A stretch of 64,000 bases of DNA, from positions 744,001 through 808,000 of the forward strand of contig CBFDEM010000002.1 of assembly GCA_965603825.1 (NCBI GenBank), read 5' to 3'. Each line of letters opens with the position of its first letter. Positions within the stretch are counted from its first letter, which is position 1. The position numbers and the translations under genes are program-made. Source of the DNA: Blepharisma stoltei ATCC 30299 (taxonomy: Eukaryota > Protista > Ciliophora). Positions 20,368 through 41,638 of the stretch are shown here, one piece after another. The notes below the pieces were generated by a model, which saw only the letters and a list, made by a program, of their open reading frames with translations, was not told the DNA's origin and searched no databases.

Positions 20368-21956
20368 TATAAGCCATGCTTGGGAAGTGTTGAAATTAGT
20401 ATGTCATCAAAATATAAAAAAATATTTAGTTGTATATATTTTTAATCGAAAATTTATTGATTTTTATTTTATCATTGATATGACTTATTTACTAGAAAAT
20501 AATACTCCAGCATAATTGCAGCGTTTTGGAAAATGGTTTTTCATGCTGTCTGGATATTTATGAGATATTGAAATTTAACTTTAAAAAGCAAGGGTCACTG
20601 GGAAAGAAAAAGTTCCAGGCCGATTTATTACAGTAATTGCAGTATATTAATCAATCAGTAAATTTTCTCAAGAGCAAATTACATAGGAAGCTCTAATAAG
20701 TCGGCATATTTTATAAATTGAAAATGAATTATATATGCAGCTTCTTTCATAATTTAATCAGAATGTTAATCTAGATATATAAATTACTCTTAATTGAGCT
20801 TAATTGCATTACTTAAATAAAGATGAGACTGAGTTAGCAATTTCTGTTAAAGCTGCTATTATGCAATTTGTTTCATTTCTGTTTTTCATTTGTTTTTCAT
20901 TATTCAGCTCATATCTAGCCTTATTAATATCATACCCAATTTCATTCATAATGTTATAATCTGGGTTTACAGCTAAAAGTTTTCTTACTGCTTCGAATAT
21001 CTCTTCCTTTGCTGATTGAACTCTTCTATCGCAATCTTTACTCTCCAATATGTACTTGGATTCTTCTTCTGATAATTTCTTGGATTTTTGGTCGAGATTT
21101 CGTATTTCTCTTTCATTTCCATTGATACGTTTGTGATTTCTTTTTCTACTTTTATGGGCTTTTTCATATCATGAAAATGGGAAGTATAGTCGCAATTACA
21201 AACCTTGCATCTTGCATCCCTCATACAATCGCAACCAGTAAATATATTCGCGTTTGTATTTGTAGTATATTGTAGAGCACAATGTTCGTGACATAAGGTA
21301 TTGCACCTGGAACAAAGCGTATTATGGTAGGATGTTTCAACAGTTTCTGTCTGCCAAACTTTTCTTTTAATTGTATAGTTCATGTTCACTTTAGCTTCAG
21401 CATCCAATGATTCTCTCTCAATGCTTATTTCTGAAATTTTGTCTTGTATGGCTATTCAGTTTTTCAAGTTATTCTTTGCATAATTATAACCTTTTAATGC
21501 ATTATTAATTTCCTCTTTCATGATGCGGAAATCTCTTGTATCGACCTCACTATATTGTGAGAGATCTTTTATTAGCCCTTCAATTACATCCATTGACAAT
21601 TCCCATTTCAAATCCAACAATTTTTTTTCGGTTTTGGTCATTTGAGAAATATCTTCTAGCTTTACGTTGAAAGCACTATTATCCATCTTATAAGACTCTT
21701 TAATTATCAGTGGGATGCATGCTTTGTTAAATGTAGCAGTTTCAGCTGAATTTGTTAGTACAAGTGCGATATTTCCTCTTACTGATAGAGGTAGAGAATT
21801 TTTTAATCTTTCTAATGCATTTTTAACACTCACGTCAAGTTTAGCGGAGCTCCCATTTTGAACTATTATAATGGCATTTATTACTTTTGTCGTGCTAAAG
21901 GTATAGAGAATTTTCAAAATATTTATATTGTCTTGATCTGGCCCACTTGTATCACT

Positions 21957-24219
21957 TAATCCTGTCTAAAAATAATTAATTAACTATTCTTATAGTCCTT
22001 GATGGGGTCCCTTATTTTTGCAAGTAACCAGTAGCCAGTATTTAGTTTCAAGAGCCAGAAAATCTGACTCTTGAGAATCACCCTTATGGGCGAATTTTAA
22101 TAAGATGAAATATCTATCCTAGGTCTTCCTTCATGCTGCTGAGCCTTGCCCAATTCAGTCCGCCCTTGCCCTACGAACTTTGAAAAATTACACCAAGCAT
22201 AGCAATTTATTCCGGCTAGAGTCTGCTTCCCAATCGATTGGTCTCTTCCACTTAAGGTTCTTTGGCCGTTAAAGAGCTCTTAAAAATGTCAAGCCTGACT
22301 CCTAAAGAGGTTCACTAAAGTTACTCATAGAGATCTCCACCCAATGTGGCACCTATTCCGTAAGTGAGATCTCTCGAAGCAGTCCTTATTGCCAAGAGCT
22401 GGTCAATCCTTTGTAACTTGCTGAAGATATATTCCATTTTATGTACCGACCCCAAGGTCGGTTTTATGCCTAGGCTCTCCTCTGGGCCTGCCCAAAGTAC
22501 CTATCAAGCTTTGCTTGAATCAGCGGTTTTGGGTCGGTCTGCTCCTCAAGTTTCTCTACAGGTCTTTGTGCCAGCACCACTTCCTAGAACCTTAACCGCT
22601 CTGTCCGCCGGGAGGGCAATATCGCATCTTGCTTGACCATCTCCTCGAGAACTTCAAGGAACTCATATTTGTATAATGCGATATCCAATAGCCTAAAGCC
22701 CAGGAGTGGCGGGTGTATTTCATTTATATGCTCAGCGAGTTTCTGTCTCACGTCTCTGTACCGTGTGCACGCCTCGATTATATGGGCTTCGTCGTCAATT
22801 ACCCCACAAATGGTTGTTTGTCAGTCTCCGCATATGAATGTTAGCAGTTCAGGAGTTAAAGCCAACTCTGTACCTGTGTATTGCCCTAAGGATGTGTCAG
22901 CTCTCTGTATTTATGCGAATATATAACGGTCTTTTCATCTCCATATTGCCTTGCTGCAGATAGGCGCATAGCTTGGCTGCCTTCTTTTCCTCCGATATGA
23001 ACCCAAGTTGTTGGTATACTCTGTAGTCCTGATCTTGCTCTGGACCTCTGACCTCAATTGCTTGTCGTCGCTGCTCCTTTGATTGCAAAGGCAATCCTCA
23101 ATAGAATAGCCCCTTAGCTGATCCAAATACCTAATTTGCCAGTCAAGACTTTCTTCAACGTTAAGGAGCATTAGGGCTTTGGTAAGTCAGTTGTTGCTTC
23201 TTTGGCATCTCAGTCTAAAATTAAGGGTCCTTACTGCGATTCTCCCACATATGGATATCCATCTCAGCTCTATCAAAGCTGCCTCATTAGCTGTGCCATT
23301 TGGGGCTTCTAGGAGCCACCTGGCTATTCTTCTCTGGATCCTTTCCATGCGATCCCATTTGGACTTCGACATGCTTGGCATGTTTTCTGAGCCACATTCC
23401 TTTGCATAAACACTAACGGTAGTGAGGCAGGCTTTCAGGATAGTTGCCTTCCTTTCAATAGAAACATCTCTTAAGGAGGCAAGCATGTCAAACTGAGCCA
23501 TGCAGCTTGCCCTAGTCTTTGCAGTCGAGCTATTGAGTCCTCCAGTGCCATTCCTTCTTGTCTGGACGATGTAGCCGAGATATCTAAAGTTCTTACTTGT
23601 CTTAAGAGGCACTTCGTTAATAACCAGAGCCTGTCTCCTCGAAGAGTCAGGCATATGCATGGTTTCTGAATTGTTCGGGTTTATCGCCACTGAGAACTTC
23701 TCCGCTCATCCGTCACATATATCCAGCATTCTCTGTAGCTCCTGGCACGTCGGTGCTAATAAAGCAATGTCATGTGCGAATAATAGTTTCCTACCTTAGC
23801 CTGGTCAAGTGGCGTCTCCAACGTCACCCCAAACCCTGCGTCTTTAATGTCCTTGACAAGCTCGTTAGGAATAAAATTGAAGCATATCGGTGATGAACTA
23901 CCTCCCTGTCTGACACCCCTTACTTATCGAGATAGGCCGTGTATGCTCGCCATTGATGATGAATGCACTTGTTTCTGCGGTGTGCATGACCTTAAGCATA
24001 GCGACTGTCTCCAGGCTAATGCCCCTTGACAGCATAATATTTAGCAGGTCTGATCTTCTCACTGAGTCGAAGGCTTTCCTTAGGTCCAAGAAGGCGCAAT
24101 GTAGCTGCTTTCCATACTTCCTGTGTCAGTCTATTATGGTTTGGAGTTTGAAAAATCTACGGCCAGGTTGAAGGGTGTAAAACTTTCCAAATATTTCTTA
24201 GAATATCCCCATAATCCTG
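21957..24219 (-). mobile_element. Insert A: retroelement-derived, IES-like insertion bounded by TAATCCTG direct repeats (21957-21964, 24212-24219)
   Basis: Empty site present in the paralog at about 30886; ends shared with insert B; TTAATTAAT tail. Confidence 0.88.
22470..24156 (-). pseudogene. 5'-truncated, frameshifted non-LTR retrotransposon ORF (RT, thumb, degenerate CCHC zinc knuckle)
   Basis: FLDLRKAFDSV, KG-VRQG...SPICFN, LLFAHD (FADD variant, 23769-23780), W(TGA)AEKFSVAINP, FRYLG, ICG..DDEAHIIEAC..Y (about 22760-22812). Confidence 0.9.
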
Positions 24220-24709
24220 GAGTATCTATAAAAATATACTTGTAGTTGTCTTTCCTATTTAAAAATTCATAATATGAACAATTTTCAGTTTTACTCAAAT
24301 AGCTTTCTGTATTTCTTTCAGAATGATTAAATCCATTTTCTGTTACCAATTTGTAATTCTCTGTAGGTATAACTATTTTCTTATTCTCTAGAGTGCCATC
24401 TCTGAAGTAATTCGCTAAGTAATTGATGAAAGTTGATTTACCATGGCCTGTATGGCCAATCAAAACACAAACAAATGTTTTTTGTGTTTCTTGACACATT
24501 TTCGATTCTACATTTATCTTATGTGGACATTTTAATTGAATAAATGTGAATTGTAATTAATTTTTATAGAATCGTAAATTATGATTTTATATAGTGAAAT
24601 TTTTATTTTTAAATTTGTCTAGCAAAATATTAGGATTTTTACGCACATAAGCTTTATTTTTTATAGAAGATAAATAAAATTTCTTAAATACTGGAAAAAT
24701 CTAGCTAGA

Positions 24710-25653
24710 CTGAAGGGGTTTTAGCCAAATGTGGGCATAAGCCGCTGTTAAGTCCTTATAAATATTCGGTGAGGCTGTTTACTATTTTGTGCACTTCGCT
24801 GCTGACAGTGTCGATTTTGGCGATAGTTTTTTGTTCAGAGTGTAAGGAATAGTTAGATCATACACTTGCGTGCTATAGCTCTGCGGGGAGTGCTATTTTT
24901 ATATTAATAATGCTTTGGATAGTGTCAAATATTAACCCTGGATATTTGTTTAAGCTTAAAGGGGATAAACTTTCAGTCACTTTTATATTTAATTACAGCA
25001 AATAAATAATTAATAGCATTTTTACCATTAATAATTAGTAATTAGATGTATTTTCAATAATAGGTATACCTAGAACCTGTATCAAGATCACAATTATAAT
25101 GAAATTTGTCCTGATTATATAATATTAAGGCCGCCAAGATCTAGACATTACCACTATTGTGAGAGATGTGTGTCAAAATTCGACCATCATTGCCAATGGG
25201 TAAATAATTGTATTGGCTCAAGGTAAATTTTATATAGAAATCTTGGATGGTTTTATGGGTTTATATGGTCGTTGTGAATTTCTGACTTTTTATTGCTATA
25301 TATATGCAGTCATGCTTTTGTTTTTGGAAGTAAACAGGGAGATGAGATTGAAAAGTTACCTTATTTTGAGTCAAATTTTATAGCGGGGCTATTTGGGGCT
25401 CTTGGACTTTTAGGAATTTTTCCTATTAGTTATTTAGTGTTAACTCAAACAAAAAATTTTTGCGTTAATAAAACTACAAGCGAGCAGTTTTCTAACAGAT
25501 AAAACAAATAAAAATAAAAATTGCTGGTTATCAAATTTCTATTTAATGTGCTGCAATGAAGGAGAAGGAAGCTATAAGCATAGAGCAAAATCTTTTTCAA
25601 GTACAAATTCCAAAGCAAGTGTCTATCAAATGATGTTGGAAGAATCCACATAA
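24710..25653 (+). pseudogene. Duplicated 3' half of the DHHC palmitoyltransferase
   Basis: Near-copy of 15377-16248 without a 5' end; two Cys-to-Tyr changes in the DHHC-CRD, 3' indels and an 83-bp insert. Confidence 0.88.
24984..25068. other. 83-bp TA-bounded IES-like insertion inside a 15-nt intron
   Basis: Parent intron gtaactttTActtag versus gtcactttTA[tattt...ggta]TAcctag here; very AT-rich with TATA ends. Confidence 0.75.
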
Positions 25654-25715
25654 ATTTATTAAATGCTAAAATTGTTTAATAGCTTAAAAGCTTAGCTATT
25701 AATGAATACTTATAG

Positions 25716-27010
25716 TTAGGATCTTCTATTACGGGTCTGTAATTTCAATATAAAAAATGCAATCAGCCTGACACAAGTGCTTAAGACAATAATCCCAACA
25801 ATTCCTTGCCATTGTTGATCAGACCATCCTAAGTCTCCTATTAGGTCACAATCTGTATCACAATCTTTTTCCCAATCGGTATATTCATTGACAGTATATC
25901 CTTGAAAAACCCATTTAAAAGGCTAAATAAATGTTACAGTAATATAAGTAATCCATCTCCAACTGATAGGAATTGAGTTTATCTTTACATTTTCTCCTCC
26001 AAATGCTTGCAAAGGAAATAGAACAATTGTACTAAAGGCATGAGCTGCTTCTACAGTCGAAAATAAAAACCCAGTGATATAGCCAAAGCCCATGCCGCAT
26101 TGTAGTGCCATGACATAAATGCAGTTAGTAATCGGCTGGATTTATTTGTCTTGGACATTTATATCCGAACTCTGCGAAATATTTTCTTGATTTGTCGCAT
26201 AATAAACTACGTTTTCTTCAGAAAGGAGCAGTAATTTATCAAATTTTTAAAAGACATTGGAGCTTGGTATGGATTGTGGAAATAATTGTTTTAACTTTAG
26301 CGGCTTGCTTTAATAGTAAATCGATAACAATTCCTGCATTATAACTGTCTAGACCCGAAGTCGGTTCGTCTAGCATAATAATGCAAGGATCAGACATGAG
26401 TTCGATTCCTATTGAAACTCTCTTCTTTTTCTCCACCAAAAACTCCTTTGATTATTGCGTTACCTATCAGATTATCAGAAATCCCTGCAATGTTGAGGTC
26501 ATTAAGGATTTTTTCTACCTTTGCATGTCTTTCTTTATCTGTTCCAGGGCATCTTAGCTTAGCATAAAACATTAGGCAATCTCTTGGAGTCAATGCAGGC
26601 AGTAAAACATCATCTTGGGTTACATAGGCTGCGTACTTACTTGTATTAAATTCTTTGGCATCTTTACCATTTGCGGTGATTTTTCCTGTCATTTCTGCTT
26701 TATTTCCACGTTTTACTCGATTTCCCAAGATGTTCAATAATGTAGTTTTGCCTGAGCCAGATGCACCCATAATAGCCAAAAACTCTCCAGGATTTGCATA
26801 TCCAGAGATGCTTTTTAAGATATGCAGAGTTTTGCCTTTAGTGGACGCATAATAATTTACATCATCCCATGAAAGCTGTACATAGCGATGAAGTTGGTTA
26901 TCAGTTTGCAAGCAAATTTTCTCATATTTTTCACTATTTTGGCTCTCGGAAATGTAAAATTCTCTTGGGCTTTCTTCACTTTCTTTAGGAGAAATAGTAT
27001 TCTCTATCAT
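25716..27010 (-). pseudogene. Chimeric ABCG pseudogene (5' like copy 2, 3' like copy 1) with large internal deletion near 26125
   Basis: Deletion junction with agta microhomology; several small deletions and frameshifts. Confidence 0.88.
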
Positions 27011-27431
27011 TATAAGCCATGCTTGAGAAGTGTTGAAATTATTATGTCATCAAAATATAAAAAAAATATTTAGTTGTATATATTTTTAATCGGAAATCTA
27101 GTGATTTTTATTTTATCATTGATATGACTTATTTACTAGAAAAATAACACTCTCACATAATTACAGCGTTTTGGATATGGCTGTCTGACTATTTATAAGA
27201 GCTAGAATTTTAATTTTAAGATGACTGAGAAAGAAAAAGTTCTAAGTTCGATTCATTGCAGCACTTGCAGTATATTAATGAGTCAGAAAATTTCCGAAGA
27301 GCAAATTAAATAGGAAACTCTAATAAACCGGCATATTTAGTTCGAAAATGAACTATATATGCAGACTCTTTCATAATTTAATCAGAATGTTAACCAAGAC
27401 ATATAAACTACTTTTAATTGAGCTTAATTGA

Positions 27432-29318
27432 TTACTTAAATAATGATGAGATTGAGTGAGCAATTTCTGTTAAAGCCTTTATTATGCTATTTTTTTCAGT
27501 TCTGATTTTCATATCTTTCTCATTATCTAGCTCATGTTGGTTCTTTTTAATATCATATTCAATTTCATTCAAAATGTTATAATCTGGGTTGACAACTAAA
27601 AGTCTTTTTACTGATTCAGTTATCTTTTGCTGTGCTGATTTAACTTTATTATTGCAATCCTCACTCTCCAATATGCACTTGGATTCTTCTTTTGATTTTA
27701 TCTCGTAATTTTTGGTCGAAACCTCATATTTCTCTTTCATACCAGCTAATACGCTTGTGATTTCTTTTTCCACTCTTACAGGCTTCTTTTTATCGTGAAA
27801 ATGGACAGTATAGTCGCAACTACAAACATTGCATTTTACATCATCCATACAAGCGCAGCCAGTAAATATATTCGCGTTTGTGTTTATAGTATATTGCAGA
27901 CCGCACCGCTCGTGGCATAAGGTATTGCACCTGGAGCAAAGTGTATTGTGATAGGATGTTTCTACAGTTTCTGTCTGCCAAACTTTACTTTTAATTGTAT
28001 AGTTCTTGTTAATTTCAGCCGTAGCATCCAATAATTTTCTCTCAATGCTTATACCTGTAATTTTGTCTTGTAGCGCTATTCAGTTTTTCAAATTAATTTT
28101 TGCATCATTATAACCTTTCAATGCATTATTAATTTCATCTCTCATAGTGACGAAATCTTTTGTGCCGACTTCTTTATATTGTGAGAGATCTTTTATTAGC
28201 TCTTCAATTACTTCCATTGACAGTGCCCATTTTGATGTCAAAATTGCTTTTTTGGATAACCTCATTCCAGAGATATCTTCTAGCTTTACGTTGAAAGAAC
28301 TATTATCCATCATATAAGACTTTTGAATATCCAGTGGGATGCATTCTTCTTTAAATGTAACAGCTTCAGCTGAGTTTGTAAGTATAAGTCCAATATTTTG
28401 TCTTGCTGATAGAGGTAGAGAATTTCTTAATCTTACTAATGCATTTTCAACACTCAAGTCAAGCCTTGCGGAACTCCCATTTTGAACTATTATGATGGCA
28501 TTTATTTTAGTTGTCTTGCCCAAGAATTTGAGAATTTTCTGAATATTTATATTGTCTTGATCTGGCCCACTTGTATCACTTAATCCTGTCTAAAAATAAT
28601 TAATTAACTTTCTTACAGTCCTTGATTGAGGTTTCTTATTTTTACAGGAAGCCAGCACTACTGCAATGATAGATCTTCTGCAGGTACAATCTTATAAAGC
28701 TAGTTATTTGCCTAATTCAAAAATAATTTTCCTAATGATTTTGTATCTCTTTGAAAGAAAGAGATAAAATGGTTTTTCGACCTCTAATGATTGATGCTCA
28801 AGGCTCCTTAGAAGATAAATTATTGCACAATCTACGGCCAGGTCAAAAGGTCTAAAACTTTCCAAATATTTCTTAGAAAAGCTCCATAATCCTGGAGTAT
28901 CAATAAAAGTATAATTGCAGTTGTCTTTCGTATTACGAAATTCATAAGATGAGCAATCATCAGTCTGACTCAAATAGCTTTTTGCATTTCGTTCAGAATG
29001 AGTTTGTCCTTTTTGTGTTAATTTATAATACTCTGTAGGTATAACTACTTTCTTATTTTCTAAAGTGCCTCCTCCGAAGTAATTCGCTAAGTAATTGATG
29101 AAAGTTGATTTACCATGGCCCGTATGACCAACCAAAACACAAATAAATGATTTTGATTCTTTAGGCAGCTCTTTAGATTCTTCAAAAGTCTTTTTTGTTT
29201 CTTCGACGCATTTCTGATCATTTATAAAGCTTCCAGTTGGTGCATTAAACTCAGGATTGTCACTTTGCGTTTGATTTATCATCTCGTCTCTCTTTATTAA
29301 TTGCTCAGAACTCTCCAT
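27432..29318 (-). CDS. AIG1/septin-like GTPase copy B; an intact 526-aa ORF once the 306-bp insert is removed
   Basis: GHTGHGKST, DTPGL|SDTSG; all segments in frame after removing 306 bp; TGA at 28080 read as Trp. Confidence 0.8.
28581..28894 (-). mobile_element. Insert B: 306-bp retroelement-derived, IES-like insertion with TAATCCTG direct repeats (28581-28588, 28887-28894)
   Basis: Same site and similar ends (about 58 bp and 70 bp) as insert A; interior translates to RT-like CAIIYLLRSLEHQSLEVEKPFYLFL. Confidence 0.85.
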
Positions 29319-29669
29319 ATTTTTATAATAATGGTGGTTGTAAGTTAATTATTTGGACATTTTATTTAATAAATCGGGATTTCATTAATTTTGTAGAATC
29401 ATAAAAGGGATTTTTAAGTACATAGGCTTTATTGTTCTGAGAAGATAAATAAAATTTCTTAAAGACTGAAAAATCAAGCTAGATTGAATTTAAATAAAAT
29501 ATTGATAGAAGCGTAATTAATTATTCTTATATATTTAAAAAATATTAATTTAAAATTTATGTCTCTATAAGAATTGGGTAATTTCAATTCCTATTTCATA
29601 TAATAAAAGAGGAGTAAACATGCATATCTTTACTAAATTAAAAGAACAATTTATTTCTAATAAAGACGG

Positions 29670-30192
29670 TTAAGATCTTTTATTACGAGTCAGAAACTTC
29701 AATAAAATGAAAGTAAAAGCCGTACGCAGGTACTTAGCACGATAATTCCAACTGGTCCTTGCCATAACTCATCAGACCATCCCAAGTGTCCTAAAGAATC
29801 ACAGTTATCACAGTCTCTTTCCCAATCGTTGTATTCATTAACTGTAAACGCTTGAAAGACCCATTTAAAAGGCTAAATAATATTTACAGCAAGATAGGTA
29901 ATCCATCTCCACGCAAGCGGAATTGAGGTGACTTTTACATGCTGCCCTCCAAATGCAGTTATAGGGAAAAGAATGACAGTACTAAAAGCAAGAGCTGTTT
30001 CAACACTTGACATCATGTACCCAGTGATATAGTCAAAGGCCATACCACACTGCAGTGCCATAGCATAAATGCAGTAAAAAATCACATATTTAGATCCATC
30101 ATGGAGGTTGAGATCTAAGCTGAAATAAGCTATAACACTTGTAAGAAATCCAGAATTAAGATTCATGGCATTTCTGTAATGTCTTTTGCTAA
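29670..30192 (-). pseudogene. ABCG 3' fragment (copy 3/4 type) fused to a GTPase 3' flank
   Basis: Near-copy of 32980-33500; breaks at about 30193 into sequence matching the 20672 region. Confidence 0.85.
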
Positions 30193-30329
30193 GAGCAAAT
30201 TATATAGGAAGCTCTAATAAGTCGGCATATTTTATAATTTGAAAATGAATTATATATGCAGATTCTTTCATAATTTAATCAGAATGTTAATCTAGATATA
30301 TAAATTACTCTTAATTGAGCTTTATTGCA

Positions 30330-31341
30330 TTACTTCAATAATGATGAGACTGAGCTAGCAATTTCTGTTAAAGCTGATATTATGTTATTATGCAATTTGC
30401 TTCATTTCTTTTTTTTTTTCATTATTAGCTCAATTCTCGCCTTATTAATATCATAGTCTCTAATCTCTTGTGGAGGCTTCACTATATTGCGAGAGATCTT
30501 CTATTAGCTCTTCAATTACTTCCATTGACAATTCCCATTTGTAATTCAATATAATTTTTTTGAATCTGCTCATTTTAGAGAAATCTTCTAGTTTTACATT
30601 AAAAGCCACATTGTCCATCATATAAGACTTTTTAATACTCAACGGGATACAATTTTCATTAATTGAAGCACTTTCAGCTAAGTTTGTTAGTATAAGAGCG
30701 ATGTTTTCACTTATTGATAGAGGCAAAGAATTTTTCAATCTTTCATATGCATTTTTAAAACACAGGTCAAGTCTGTAGTTCCCATTTTGAACTATTATAA
30801 TAGCATTTATTTTTTTTGTCATATTCAAGAAATTGAGAATTTTCTGAATATTTCTATTGTCTTGATGTGGCCCGCTTGCACCACTTAATCCTAGAGTATC
30901 TATAAAAATATACTTGCAGTTGTCTTTCCTATTTAAAAATTCATAAGATGAACAATTTTCAGTTTGACTCAAATAGAGTTCTGGATTTCTTTCAGAATGA
31001 TTAAATCCATTTTCTGTTACTAATTTGTAATAATCTGTAGGTATGACTACTTTCCTATTCTCTAGAGTGCCATCTCTTAAGTAATTCGCTAAGTAATTGA
31101 TTAAAGTTGATTTACCATGGCCTATAGGACCAATCAAAACACAAACAAATGATTTTGATACTGCTTGAATCTTTTTCGACTCTTCAGGGGGCTTTTTCGA
31201 TTTTTCAGGTGGCTTTTTTGCTTCTTCGACGCATTTCTGATCATTTATAAAGCTTCCAGTTGGTGCATTAAACTCAGGATTGTCACTTTGCGTTTGATTT
31301 ATCATCTCGTCTCTCTTTATTAATTGCTCAGAACTCTCCAT
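30330..31341 (-). pseudogene. GTPase copy C: uninterrupted G domain (empty site) but Cys-rich/coiled region deleted near 30455
   Basis: GPIGHGKST, DTLGLSGASG with no insert; ORF stops TAG at 30460; residual C-terminal sequence 30330-30455. Confidence 0.8.
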
Positions 31342-31719
31342 ATTTTTATAATAATGGTGGTTGTAAGTTAATTATTTGGACATTTTATTTAATAAATAGG
31401 GATTTCATTAATTTTTGTAGAATCATAAAAGGGATTTTTAAGTACATAGGCTTTATTGTTCTGAGAAGATAAATAAAATTTCTTAAAGACTGAAAAATCA
31501 AGCTAGATTGAATTTAAATAAAATATTGATAGAAGCGTAATTAAATATAAGCATAAAAAAAAAGAAGCAACTTGTATATAAATATTTAAAATAATTTCTT
31601 GATATAATTATTGTTTGGCATCAGGGATATGAGAACTTATGTCTTTTTGTATATATACATTAAAATGGCATCAAGAACCAATACTAATTGCCAATTCTGT
31701 TGTCAGCTATTTTTGCTAA

Positions 31720-39243: not shown

Positions 39244-41638
39244 TTAAGTACTTTTACTTCGGGTCTGTAATTTCAAAATAAAATACGAAATAAGCCTAAC
39301 ACAAGCGCTGATCACCAGTATACCAATGATGCCTTGCCATAGCTCATCAGACCATCCCAAGTCTCCGATAGGATCGCATTCTGTTTCACAATCTTTTTCC
39401 CAATCCGTATACTCGTTAACAGTAAATGCTTGAAAAGTCCATTTAAAAGGCTAAATAATTTTTACAGTAATATACGTAACCCATCTCCAAGCCAGCGGAA
39501 TTGAATCGATTTTTACATTTTCTCCTCCAAATTCAGTGAGAGGGAAGAGAACTACTGTACTAAATGCATGAGCTGCTTCAACAGTAGAAAACATGAAGCC
39601 AGTTGCATAGCCAAAGCCCATACCCATTTGAAGTGATAAAACATATATAAAATCTGCATAAAAATTACAGAAAATCACGAATTTTGATCCGTCATAAAGG
39701 TTGAGATCCAAGCTGAAATATGATACAACTCCAGTGAGTATCCCAGCAATAAAAGTTCAAGGTATGTCAACAATATTCTTAGCTAAGAAATACGACCATG
39801 CCCCATATAGCCCTTCATCACTTTCTTTCAAAATAACAGCCCTCTCCATATGATCTAAATAACCATTACAGTTCAATACAACCGAGCTATTCCCACTCAT
39901 CACTGACCATATAGAAAGCATATAAAGAACCCCATTGATATTTTGTATAGCTTCTTGCCCATTTCCTAAGTCATTGAAAATAATAGCTAATAGGACTCCT
40001 ATCACTAAAGCCATTAAAAACCTAAGCCTTAGCGCATATCTGTTTTTCGCTGCTGTTTTGGCTGATCTTTTGAGTAATTCCAAAAACTCTACCCAGTAAC
40101 TTGGGTGGTAACTCTCTATTTCTTGTAGCTGAGAAAGCTCATATTTTGTCTCTGTTTCTTTGACGTAATTTTCTCTATAATTTTGTGTAAATAAGTCTAG
40201 CTTATTTTGCTCCTCTTCTGTAATTTCGTGCCTGTTTGTTATATGGAGCATTCTCATATAGTAATCGGCTGGATTTACTTGTCTTGGACATTTATATCCG
40301 AGCTCTGCAAAATATTTTCTTGATTTGTCGCATGGGCCATGGTAGACTACGTTTCCTTCAGAAAGAAGCATTAATTTATCGAATTTTTTGAAAACATTGG
40401 AACTTGGTTGGTGAATTGTGGAAATAATTGTTCTGCCTTTAGCTGCTTGTTTTAATAGTAGATCGACTACTATTCCTGCGTTATAACTGTCTAGGCCTGA
40501 AGTTGGCTCATCTAGCGTAATAATGCAAGGATCTGACATTAATTCAATTCCTATACTAACCCTTTTTTTTCTCCACCAGAGATTCCTTTGATTATTGTAT
40601 TACCAATAATATTCATTAAAACGGTGTCTTGAGTCAATATATCCTCATAATACCTTTGTTGTACACCTGCAATAGAACTATGAGATCTTGATAAGGAAAA
40701 CAGAGCTCGAAAAATCCGGGCTAATTTAGCGGCACAGAGAGGCTATCCTTTCTCTCACCCAGATCGTCTTTTATTAGGTGAGTTAAACTTGGGAGGCTCA
40801 GCAATACCTAGGACATCTCACTAGACCAATTAGACAGCTTCCTATTGTGATACCAGCATTTTGTCTTAGGCTTTGAGTTTCTGATTTGGCCTCAAAATGA
40901 GAAGGAATTTAAATTTCTAAGTCACCCTGAATAGACGTTTTTTATGTTGACCTTTCTAATTCCAGATAATAAGAGAAGATCTTTGTTAGAAGTAGCGACA
41001 AGTGCAGGACTGTGTGCAGAACTGGTTGAAAAGCGATCAGCGTTAATAGAAGCGTGGCCTACACTATAATTAATTAATGCTAATGCATTTCCAATTAAAT
41101 TGTCTGCTATTTTTGCTATGTTTAGATCGCTAAGAATCTCTTCTACTTTTGCTAATCTTTCTTTAGCATTTCCAGGACATCTCAAAGCTGCATAGAACAT
41201 TAAGCAGTCCCTTGGGGTTAGAACTGGTAATAAAATATCATCTTGAGTCACATAAGCTGCATATTTACTTATGCTGATCTCTTTTGTGTCTTTTCCATTA
41301 GCTGTAATCGTCCCAGTTCTTTCTGTCTGGCCTGCACTTGTTACCCTATTTGCCAAAATATTCAAAAGCGAGGTCTTCCCTGACCCAGATGAGCCCATAA
41401 TCGCTAAAAACTCCCCAGGATTTGCATGCCCAGACACGCTTTTCAAAATCTGTATAGTTTTCCCTTTAGTAGACGCATAATAATTTATATTTTCCCATGA
41501 TAGTTTCACATATCTGCCAATGTGATCTTCAGCTTTTAAAGGAGTTTTTAGGCTCTGCTCACTATTTTGACTATCAGAATTCACATATTCTCTTGGAGTC
41601 TCTTCACTATCTCTTGAATAAATTTTATTATCAATCAT
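39244..41638 (-). pseudogene. ABCG copy 5 interrupted by a 488-bp insert, with A8 instead of A9 at 40563-40570; introns 39451-39465, 39654-39668, 39855-39869
   Basis: NLIGNAL|IKGISGGE split by the insert; otherwise complete motifs. Confidence 0.8.
40593..41082 (+). mobile_element. Insert C: decayed non-LTR-like fragment with TAATTAATTAAT tail and diverged 21-bp target duplication
   Basis: Plus-frame RARKIRANLAAQRGYPFSHPDRLLLGELNLGGSAIP resembles the post-RT 'G.P...P...L......GGLG.P' motif; 40593-40613 versus 41081-41101 match 16/21. Confidence 0.7.

Follow-up and report, generated by a model that had tools for sequence, protein, structure and literature searches.

The macronuclear (MAC) genome of the ciliate Blepharisma stoltei ATCC 30299, which comprises 64 telomere-to-telomere contigs, is 66% AT and reads UGA as tryptophan (PMC9942806), retains remnants of retrotransposons of the non-LTR type (lacking a long terminal repeat), with 29 genes that carry the RVT_1 reverse transcriptase (RT) domain, some of them together with an APE domain, and with negligible expression (PMC9942856). 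The subject here is a pair of inserts, A and B, which interrupt two paralogs of a tandemly arranged P-loop GTPase gene in a stretch of 64,000 nucleotides of this genome (the window; contig 2:744001-808000 of a genome with 41.46 Mb in 64 contigs). Insert A resembles the published remnants of long interspersed nuclear elements (LINEs) in its RVT_1 match, its APE+RT kin, its presence in the somatic genome and its little or no expression, and differs from them in that it lies within the coding G3 motif of a GTPase, is common to two paralogs and has a short form with the same ends (PMC9942856). The insert is thus of an already known kind, a LINE remnant kept in the Blepharisma MAC, here in a GTPase. 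At about even confidence, and on the strength of sequence comparison, A and B may be taken to carry one old LINE-mediated insertion, made by target-primed reverse transcription (TPRT) in the DTPG/L codons of the GTPase and later remodelled in A, with gene disruption and ordinary decay, rather than domestication as an intron or as an internal eliminated sequence (IES), as the probable consequence.

Mammalian L1 elements leave 5'-truncated insertions with microhomology at the junctions, and with deletion of the target site or capture at breaks. Such truncated insertions share with A an intact 3' end placed by an A-run, a 5' truncation within the RT, junction microhomology, and the loss of target DNA in place of a new duplication. 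The present case differs in that the target would be an older retro-insert, the tail is TTAA/TAAT-rich and not poly(A), and the event is reconstructed from two paralogs. Introners of the miniature inverted-repeat transposable element (MITE) type are likewise target-duplicating coding insertions with GT/AG near their ends (Huff et al. 2016, cited in PMC9942856), whereas here there is a single locus whose gene models are unspliced, in a host with introns of 15-16 nt, and the candidate splice sites avoid the duplication. Similarly, the IESs of Blepharisma are intragenic and bounded by a direct repeat containing TA (PMC9942856), whereas the insert stands at full depth in MAC DNA contigs. The locus would serve as a dated, two-state case, with a short form and a LINE-bearing form between the same ends, and could show the capture of a LINE at an old insertion site in a ciliate, within a gene family that here evolves by tandem duplication and gene conversion.

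The 8-bp sequence TAATCCTG is found at 21957, 24212, 28581 and 28887 of the window and borders insert A and insert B alike as a duplication. With one repeat copy counted in each, insert A occupies 21965-24219 (2255 bp) and insert B 28589-28894 (306 bp); both are placed after the DTPGL codons, and the genes concerned all lie on the minus strand. In a third paralog, C, a single-copy (empty) site, TAATCCTA at 30886-30893, reads DTLGL/SGASG. This arrangement, two split paralogs and an empty third, had been described in a first-pass annotation of the window, and the sequence agrees with it. Given that six further paralogs on the same contig carry FIDTPGLSDTRG without interruption, the insert is the derived state. 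The parts of the two inserts and the empty site are as follows.

21957-21964, minus strand: target-site duplication copy on the downstream side of insert A (gene orientation), TAATCCTG on the plus strand
21965-22033, minus strand: 3' end of insert A, common to B, about 69 nt, AT-rich, a LINE-like tail ending GTTAATTAATTATTTTTAGA
22034-24153, minus strand: insert A's body, a LINE of APE type, decayed and truncated at its 5' end, comprising the RT (beginning at the DQIF region), a C-terminal region and the 3' untranslated region (UTR)
24154-24211, minus strand: 5' segment of insert A common to B, 58 nt with 7 differences and no RT signal
24212-24219, minus strand: target-site duplication copy on the upstream side of insert A (P-G-L codons of DTPGL)
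28581-28588, minus strand: target-site duplication copy on the downstream side of insert B
28589-28657, minus strand: 3' end of insert B common to A, the last 21 nt identical to A
28658-28828, minus strand: the 171 nt inside insert B, at 31% GC, a unique sequence within the somatic genome
28829-28886, minus strand: 5' segment of insert B common to A
28887-28894, minus strand: target-site duplication copy on the upstream side of insert B
30886-30893, minus strand: empty site of paralog C, TAATCCTA

In a genome-wide search the 5' ends of the two inserts match with 88% identity over 72 nt (E 7e-18) and the 3' ends with 85% identity over 67 nt (E 3.5e-12). The first 58 nt past the repeat, in gene orientation, hold 7 differences between A and B, and the last 69 nt or so hold 10 differences and 2 indels. 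Between these ends the interiors are unlike each other whichever strand is compared (a local score of 14, where shuffles give 12.2 +/- 1.4), and alignments and shuffles together thus agree with the earlier description of shared ends around unrelated interiors. That B might be a simple deletion of A, which the annotation had listed among the results that would refute its reading, is ruled out, as no significant local alignment was found on either strand. DNA contigs of independent public runs cross the 5' junction of A and the entire B insert. A and B have the site, the 8-bp duplication and the ends in common, which shows one shared insertion event, as had been proposed, with an age equal to the local A-B divergence, and the further proposal that the interior of one copy was later exchanged agrees with the shared ends and unrelated middles.

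The interior of A encodes an RT, as had been claimed. It matches RVT_1 as consecutive pieces, reaches 35.3 bits in a genome scan, and matches with E 1e-26 a profile built from this genome's GC-richer APE+RT LINE family, here labelled famI. Members of famI have an APE domain that precedes the RT by about 1 kb; the A copy is without APE and the first RT motifs and begins at the DQIF region, and its 3' UTR aligns with the copies on C64 and C17 to their common end, the pattern of a 5' truncation with an intact 3' end. Its nearest relatives at the DNA level are fragments on C64 (87%), C17 (81%), C56 and C50. The copy is damaged: FADD has become FAHD, the frame shifts twice, and the 573 codons include two TAA/TAG stops; from these two stops a decay of 2-5% is the best fit. 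TGA reads as tryptophan in long open reading frames (ORFs) of this genome, and the RT frame of A (22473-24194) has 8 in-frame TGA beside 13 TGG; the ORF of the element was therefore written in the UGA=Trp code of its host.

The limits of this LINE fall close to the limits of the similarity between A and B. On the 5' side, RT homology starts at nt 62 of insert A and A/B similarity stops at nt 66-72; on the 3' side, the C64 and C17 copies cease to resemble A or one another at insert positions 2195-2200, and A/B similarity resumes at 2187-2189, about 10 nt from that end of homology. The GC content switches at the same boundaries, from 45.7% in the body of A to 29-38% in the ends, with 31% in the interior of B. 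Because boundaries of homology and of GC coincide, the LINE body is a discrete unit that stands where B has 171 nt. The 5' junction of A has the sequence GTAGATTTTTCAAAC, against GATCAGATTTTCAAG in L015, a related copy of the LINE, and GTAGATT followed by GTGC in B; AGATT remains as a junction microhomology. At the 3' junction the LINE of A ends in CTTGC before an AAAAA run that is also present in B (TGTAAAAATAAG). Such an A-run is the type of site at which TPRT starts in L1-type elements.

These features suggest the following history. An old TPRT-type insertion made the 8-bp target duplication in a GTPase gene and reached A and B, by duplication or by gene conversion, at a time corresponding to some 12-15% neutral divergence. 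B would retain this older, short form. In A, a 5'-truncated famI LINE would later have been captured within the older insert, with a loss of about 171 bp; its priming may have taken place at the A5 run still present in B (TGTAAAAATAAG), and its truncated 5' end may have been joined via the AGATT microhomology. In each gene the insert would then separate an N-terminal fragment from a downstream ORF. That B is the older short form and the LINE body of A a nested second integration is the favoured reading, though not a proven one; it is favoured because it accounts for both coincident boundaries, for both microhomologies and for the light damage of the LINE.

The outer 3' end common to both inserts, GTTAATTAATTATTTTTAGA, is similar to TAAT/TTAA-rich ends on other LINE copies in the genome, for example AATAATTAATTTAATCC(TAATCC)n in an AT-rich multicopy LINE family, and a second copy of this exact tail is absent from the MAC genome. 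Near-identical AT-rich LINE copies (L021-L025, e.g. C30:284609-288370) end in AATAATTAATTTAATCC followed by TAATCC-like repeats, and the TAATCC unit happens to coincide with the six bases that open the TAATCCTG duplication, although relative to the RT the two run in opposite directions. A copy of a related AT-rich subgroup, L027 (C11:212-3976), runs straight into telomeric GGGTGTTA repeats.

The interior of B is a different matter. The first-pass annotation held that it came from a second RT family, exchanged for the first at a homologous RT position, and suggested a search of both interiors with RVT_1; A matches RT profiles and B does not. No Pfam match to the B interior exists at E<=10. Against three RT profiles built from this genome it reaches at most 2.3 bits, at profile positions that do not suit the proposed exchange, and its RT scores are equalled by 16 to 365 of 500 shuffles. 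Searched by tblastn against 35 LINE loci it has no match; neither its DNA nor its six-frame translation matches anything elsewhere in the MAC genome; and it carries no Rfam or tRNA signal. The B interior as an RT is accordingly rejected, without support from Pfam, the genome-built RT profiles, tblastn or the whole-genome six-frame search. Likewise, B as a non-autonomous element of the short interspersed nuclear element (SINE) kind is rejected, as it is single copy in the MAC genome and has no tRNA or Rfam match, and so is the idea that its interior or the shared ends form a repeat family: no part of B, shared ends included, has another copy in the MAC genome, and other loci with these ends around different interiors, which had been suggested as a place to look, are absent from it. 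The P-G-R triplet that the annotation had noticed in the shared 5' part is indeed there, but its assignment as an RT motif fails on register. In famI, GxxGRS sits 6-7 residues before DQIF, whereas in A the residues PGRR abut those that align with QIF; RT homology begins at frame-1 residue 21 (RFFKLQ, aligned with DQIFxLE), directly behind PGRR. The 5' breakpoint is therefore the start of RT homology and does not lie within shared RT sequence, contrary to an exchange at a homologous RT position. Because B is without RT, Rfam, tRNA or genome matches and the PGR is off register, two different RT interiors are unsupported.

The age of the insertion can be set against that of its surroundings. A and B diverge by 12-15% in the insert ends, by 12.4% at four-fold sites and by 12.5% in the 3' non-coding flank; the ends thus evolve on average at the neutral rate, and the suggestion that they were kept because removal needs them is not supported, ends no more conserved than neutral flanks being an outcome that the annotation itself had named as refuting. 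The claim that the insertion preceded the gene duplication stands as to a single shared event and falls as to a clean duplication, since gene conversion has made mosaics of all three paralogs. In the 5' flank, B and C share 94-100% identity. Between A and C the identity is 93-94% for the N-terminal core, as far as the insertion site, and 95-97% for the 3' flank; behind the insertion site it is A and B that resemble each other most. Synonymous divergence between A and B is likewise uneven, 0.15 beside the insert and 0.23-0.33 elsewhere. Given this mosaic identity and the uneven synonymous divergence along the gene, gene conversion has been active, and the insertion may therefore have been copied by conversion and not by duplication. 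What had been described as one insertion before duplication may, in other words, be one insertion spread by conversion.

Paralog C (30100-31420) is degenerate, with DTLG for DTPG, GPIGHGKS in its P-loop and a sequence cut short about 145 codons past the site. It is a patchwork of tracts like B and tracts like A, which indicates repeated gene conversion in the array. A DNA contig of run X7 joins the P-loop regions of A and B at 24482/29190, skipping 4707 nt, with a shorter side of 27 nt; this joint is probably an assembly-graph effect of a 45-nt identical block, or possibly a rare unequal recombination.

Whether the insert is removed from DNA or RNA bears directly on its proposed domestication. 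MAC DNA contigs of the runs X1 and X7 span 28580-29105 at a depth like that of the flanks, and no DNA joint that skips the insert occurs in the MAC DNA contigs, either at the B insert or at the 5' junction of A. A ciliate IES is consequently rejected, the insert being present in MAC DNA at full depth without a skipping joint. Four kilobases away an 83-bp TA..TA segment (24984-25066) is skipped exactly in X7, where 24983 is joined to 25067, and is kept in X1 and in the assembly; it has the look of an IES whose excision from the somatic DNA is only partial, and as its excised form is seen in X7, the data could have shown excision of the insert as well. At the RNA level, contigs of two probable RNA runs include none on GTPase B or on the N-terminal exon of A (23900-29400, contigs only), and the same two runs cover the neighbouring ABC-transporter gene. 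One exact contig of depth 2, from the probable RNA run X9, lies at 23911-24079, inside the LINE body of A, and word shares of 0.26-0.34 in the RNA runs suggest further coverage in 21000-23900. The RNA-seq-guided gene models are split, one model of each pair ending within the insert and the other starting from an internal Met that lies 90 codons past it. The models and gene halves are these.

24137-24499, minus strand: N-terminal model of GTPase A (P0003, 121 aa), from the P-loop to DTPGL and then 25 codons into the insert
20988-21956, minus strand: downstream half of GTPase A (model P0007, 233 aa, from an internal Met), its tail frameshifted relative to B
28707-29318, minus strand: N-terminal model of GTPase B (P0001, 204 aa), running 62 codons into the insert
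27435-28580, minus strand: downstream half of GTPase B, open to the ancestral stop (model P0006, 293 aa, internal Met at about 28313)

The N-terminal extension has been lost in A. In a Pfam search with the exons queried separately, the host gene scores 28.9 and 30.2 bits with MMR_HSR1 and 26.9 and 34.6 bits with GTP_EFTU, all above the cut-off, and the G1 motif GHTGHGKS and the G3 motif DTPG are present. No protein in a large protein database holds the 90 codons behind the insert. In this organism 97% of introns are 15-16 nt long, splicing efficiency drops with length, and the branch A normally lies 4-5 nt from the acceptor (PMC9942806, supplementary information). The route from retrotransposon to IES or intron that the annotation had envisaged thus meets full MAC depth, split gene models and an intron population of quite another size, all of which point away from it.

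Several observations nonetheless weigh against the reading of an old insertion followed by disruption, decay and nested capture in A. As regards the fate of the genes, both halves together contain no stop in about 390 codons (simulated neutral P about 6e-4); gap events number 2 in 1168 coding nt and 5 in 265 nt of non-coding flank; and omega between A and B is 0.54 overall, like that of intact paralogs (0.58-0.78). By segment, omega is 0.45 in the N-terminal core, 1.04 in the 90-codon segment that follows the insert (32 non-synonymous beside 9 synonymous changes, against an omega of 0.2-0.4 in well-diverged intact paralogs) and 0.40 in the distal part; the value of 1.04 speaks, in the other direction, against continued function, and these differences between segments are not significant and are confounded by gene conversion. 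Further, the longest identical run between A and B, an exception to the neutral divergence of the ends, straddles the 3' junction of the insert: it is 68 nt long (21918-21985 / 28542-28609), the longest in 2282 aligned nt, where the run at the P-loop has 45 nt, and 21 of its nucleotides lie in the insert (P about 0.05, marginal), the rest coding for the conserved SDTSGPDQDNINI. The open frames on both sides of the insert speak against plain decay. As regards the direction of change, B has 9 of the 12 nt at the end of the 3' UTR of A's LINE (CTGGCTTCCTGT vs CTGGTTACTTGC), and the LINE end could therefore already be ancestral; a LINE decay of 6-7.5%, equal to the age of the A-B split, is also compatible with the damage seen (P 0.12-0.19); and in the MAC genome the short insert of B has no second copy to show what it was. 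Nested capture in A, from short form to LINE form, is accordingly the favoured direction for the change of the interior and not a proven one.

The strongest competitor, unlikely but deserving of attention, is that a single long, possibly full-length, LINE inserted once, and that A and B are independent derivatives of it by internal deletion, A having lost the part from nt 59 to the DQIF region of the RT, and B having kept about 230 nt of an AT-rich 5' end and lost the rest down to the last 80 nt or so. Such a history needs no coincidence of breakpoints, as each boundary of A/B similarity is simply the end of a deletion; the tail is LINE-like, B keeps about 12 nt like the conserved 3' UTR end of the LINE, and internal deletions are common in old LINE copies such as those on C17 and C64. 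Against this, the 5' part and interior of B match nothing in the MAC genome, copies of APE+RT LINEs included, B has 31-38% GC where the body has 45.7%, and single insertion provides no reason for microhomologies of AGATT and A5 at the junctions. Full-length insertion is, moreover, the rarer outcome of TPRT.

Less probable again is that the A form, 58 nt followed by the truncated LINE and the tail, is ancestral, and that in B a repair event removed the body of the LINE and put 171 bp of filler DNA in its place. A would then be the coherent product of a single TPRT event with its target duplication, the last bases of the LINE 3' UTR shared by B would be a relic, and an interior without detectable source is what filler often presents. 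But such a deletion must have begun no more than 5-10 nt from the start of RT homology and ended within about 15 nt of the point at which the LINE copies diverge, two coincidences in a 2.2-kb insert, and a filler of 171 bp without a template in the genome is unusual.

A third alternative departs from the preferred reading of disruption and decay in that the GTPases would still work. The inserts would be spliced as long GT-AG introns (28590-28835 in B, 246 nt; 21966-24160 in A, 2195 nt), leaving 11-20 extra residues after DTPGL. Enumeration of in-frame GT-AG pairs by script over the joined frames yields two that are kept in both A and B: GCC/GTAGATT...TTTTTAG/ACA, which adds 20 residues, and the alternative GGAAA/GTTTTA...GACAG/GATTA, which adds 11 (slashes mark the splice points). 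Both candidate donors lie within the shared 5' segment (24154-24211 in A), and the candidate introns measure 246-273 nt in B and 2195-2222 nt in A. The reading frames on either side are free of stops and frameshifts, the omega of 0.54 resembles that of intact paralogs, the 68-nt identical block covers the candidate acceptor, and G1 and G3 are intact in A and B and not in the uninterrupted C. However, the same scan yields many in-frame GT-AG pairs that arise by chance, and for that reason the conserved pairs carry little weight. Likewise, 97% of introns have 15-16 nt and efficiency falls with length (PMC9942806, supplementary information), the RNA-seq-guided models end in the insert and restart at an internal Met, the two probable RNA runs have no contigs over the exons, and the 90 codons behind the insert, with their omega of 1.04 (9 synonymous, 32 non-synonymous), are held by no database protein. 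Long-intron splicing is therefore improbable, and is kept at its small weight because both halves are open and in frame. If the inserts are spliced, the interrupted GTPases would be functional with 11-20 extra residues in switch II; if this were true, a retrotransposon insertion would have been caught becoming an intron, and the locus would bear on the question of how a spliceosome of tiny introns handles long inserts and how retroelements give rise to introns.

Least credible by far, and contradicted on both of its testable points, the RT likeness of B and the conservation of the ends, is the model of the first-pass annotation, an interior swapped for that of a second RT family at the homologous position between ends kept for removal: the interiors differ between shared ends, as it requires, and frame 2 of B is open for 62 codons with a faint likeness of YKIIRKII to the RT motif YKILDKII, but none of the frames of B gives a significant RT signal, the faint match is placed upstream of the required position and is equalled by 16 of 500 shuffles, the PGR does not fall in register with the RT alignment, divergence of the ends is neutral, and the insert stays in DNA, with split gene models that give no sign of its removal from RNA.

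Elsewhere in the window a third GC-rich, retro-like insert, without nucleotide similarity to the LINE of A or to the fetched LINE loci, lies at 40593-41101 inside an ABC-transporter paralog and ends in TATAATTAATTAAT.

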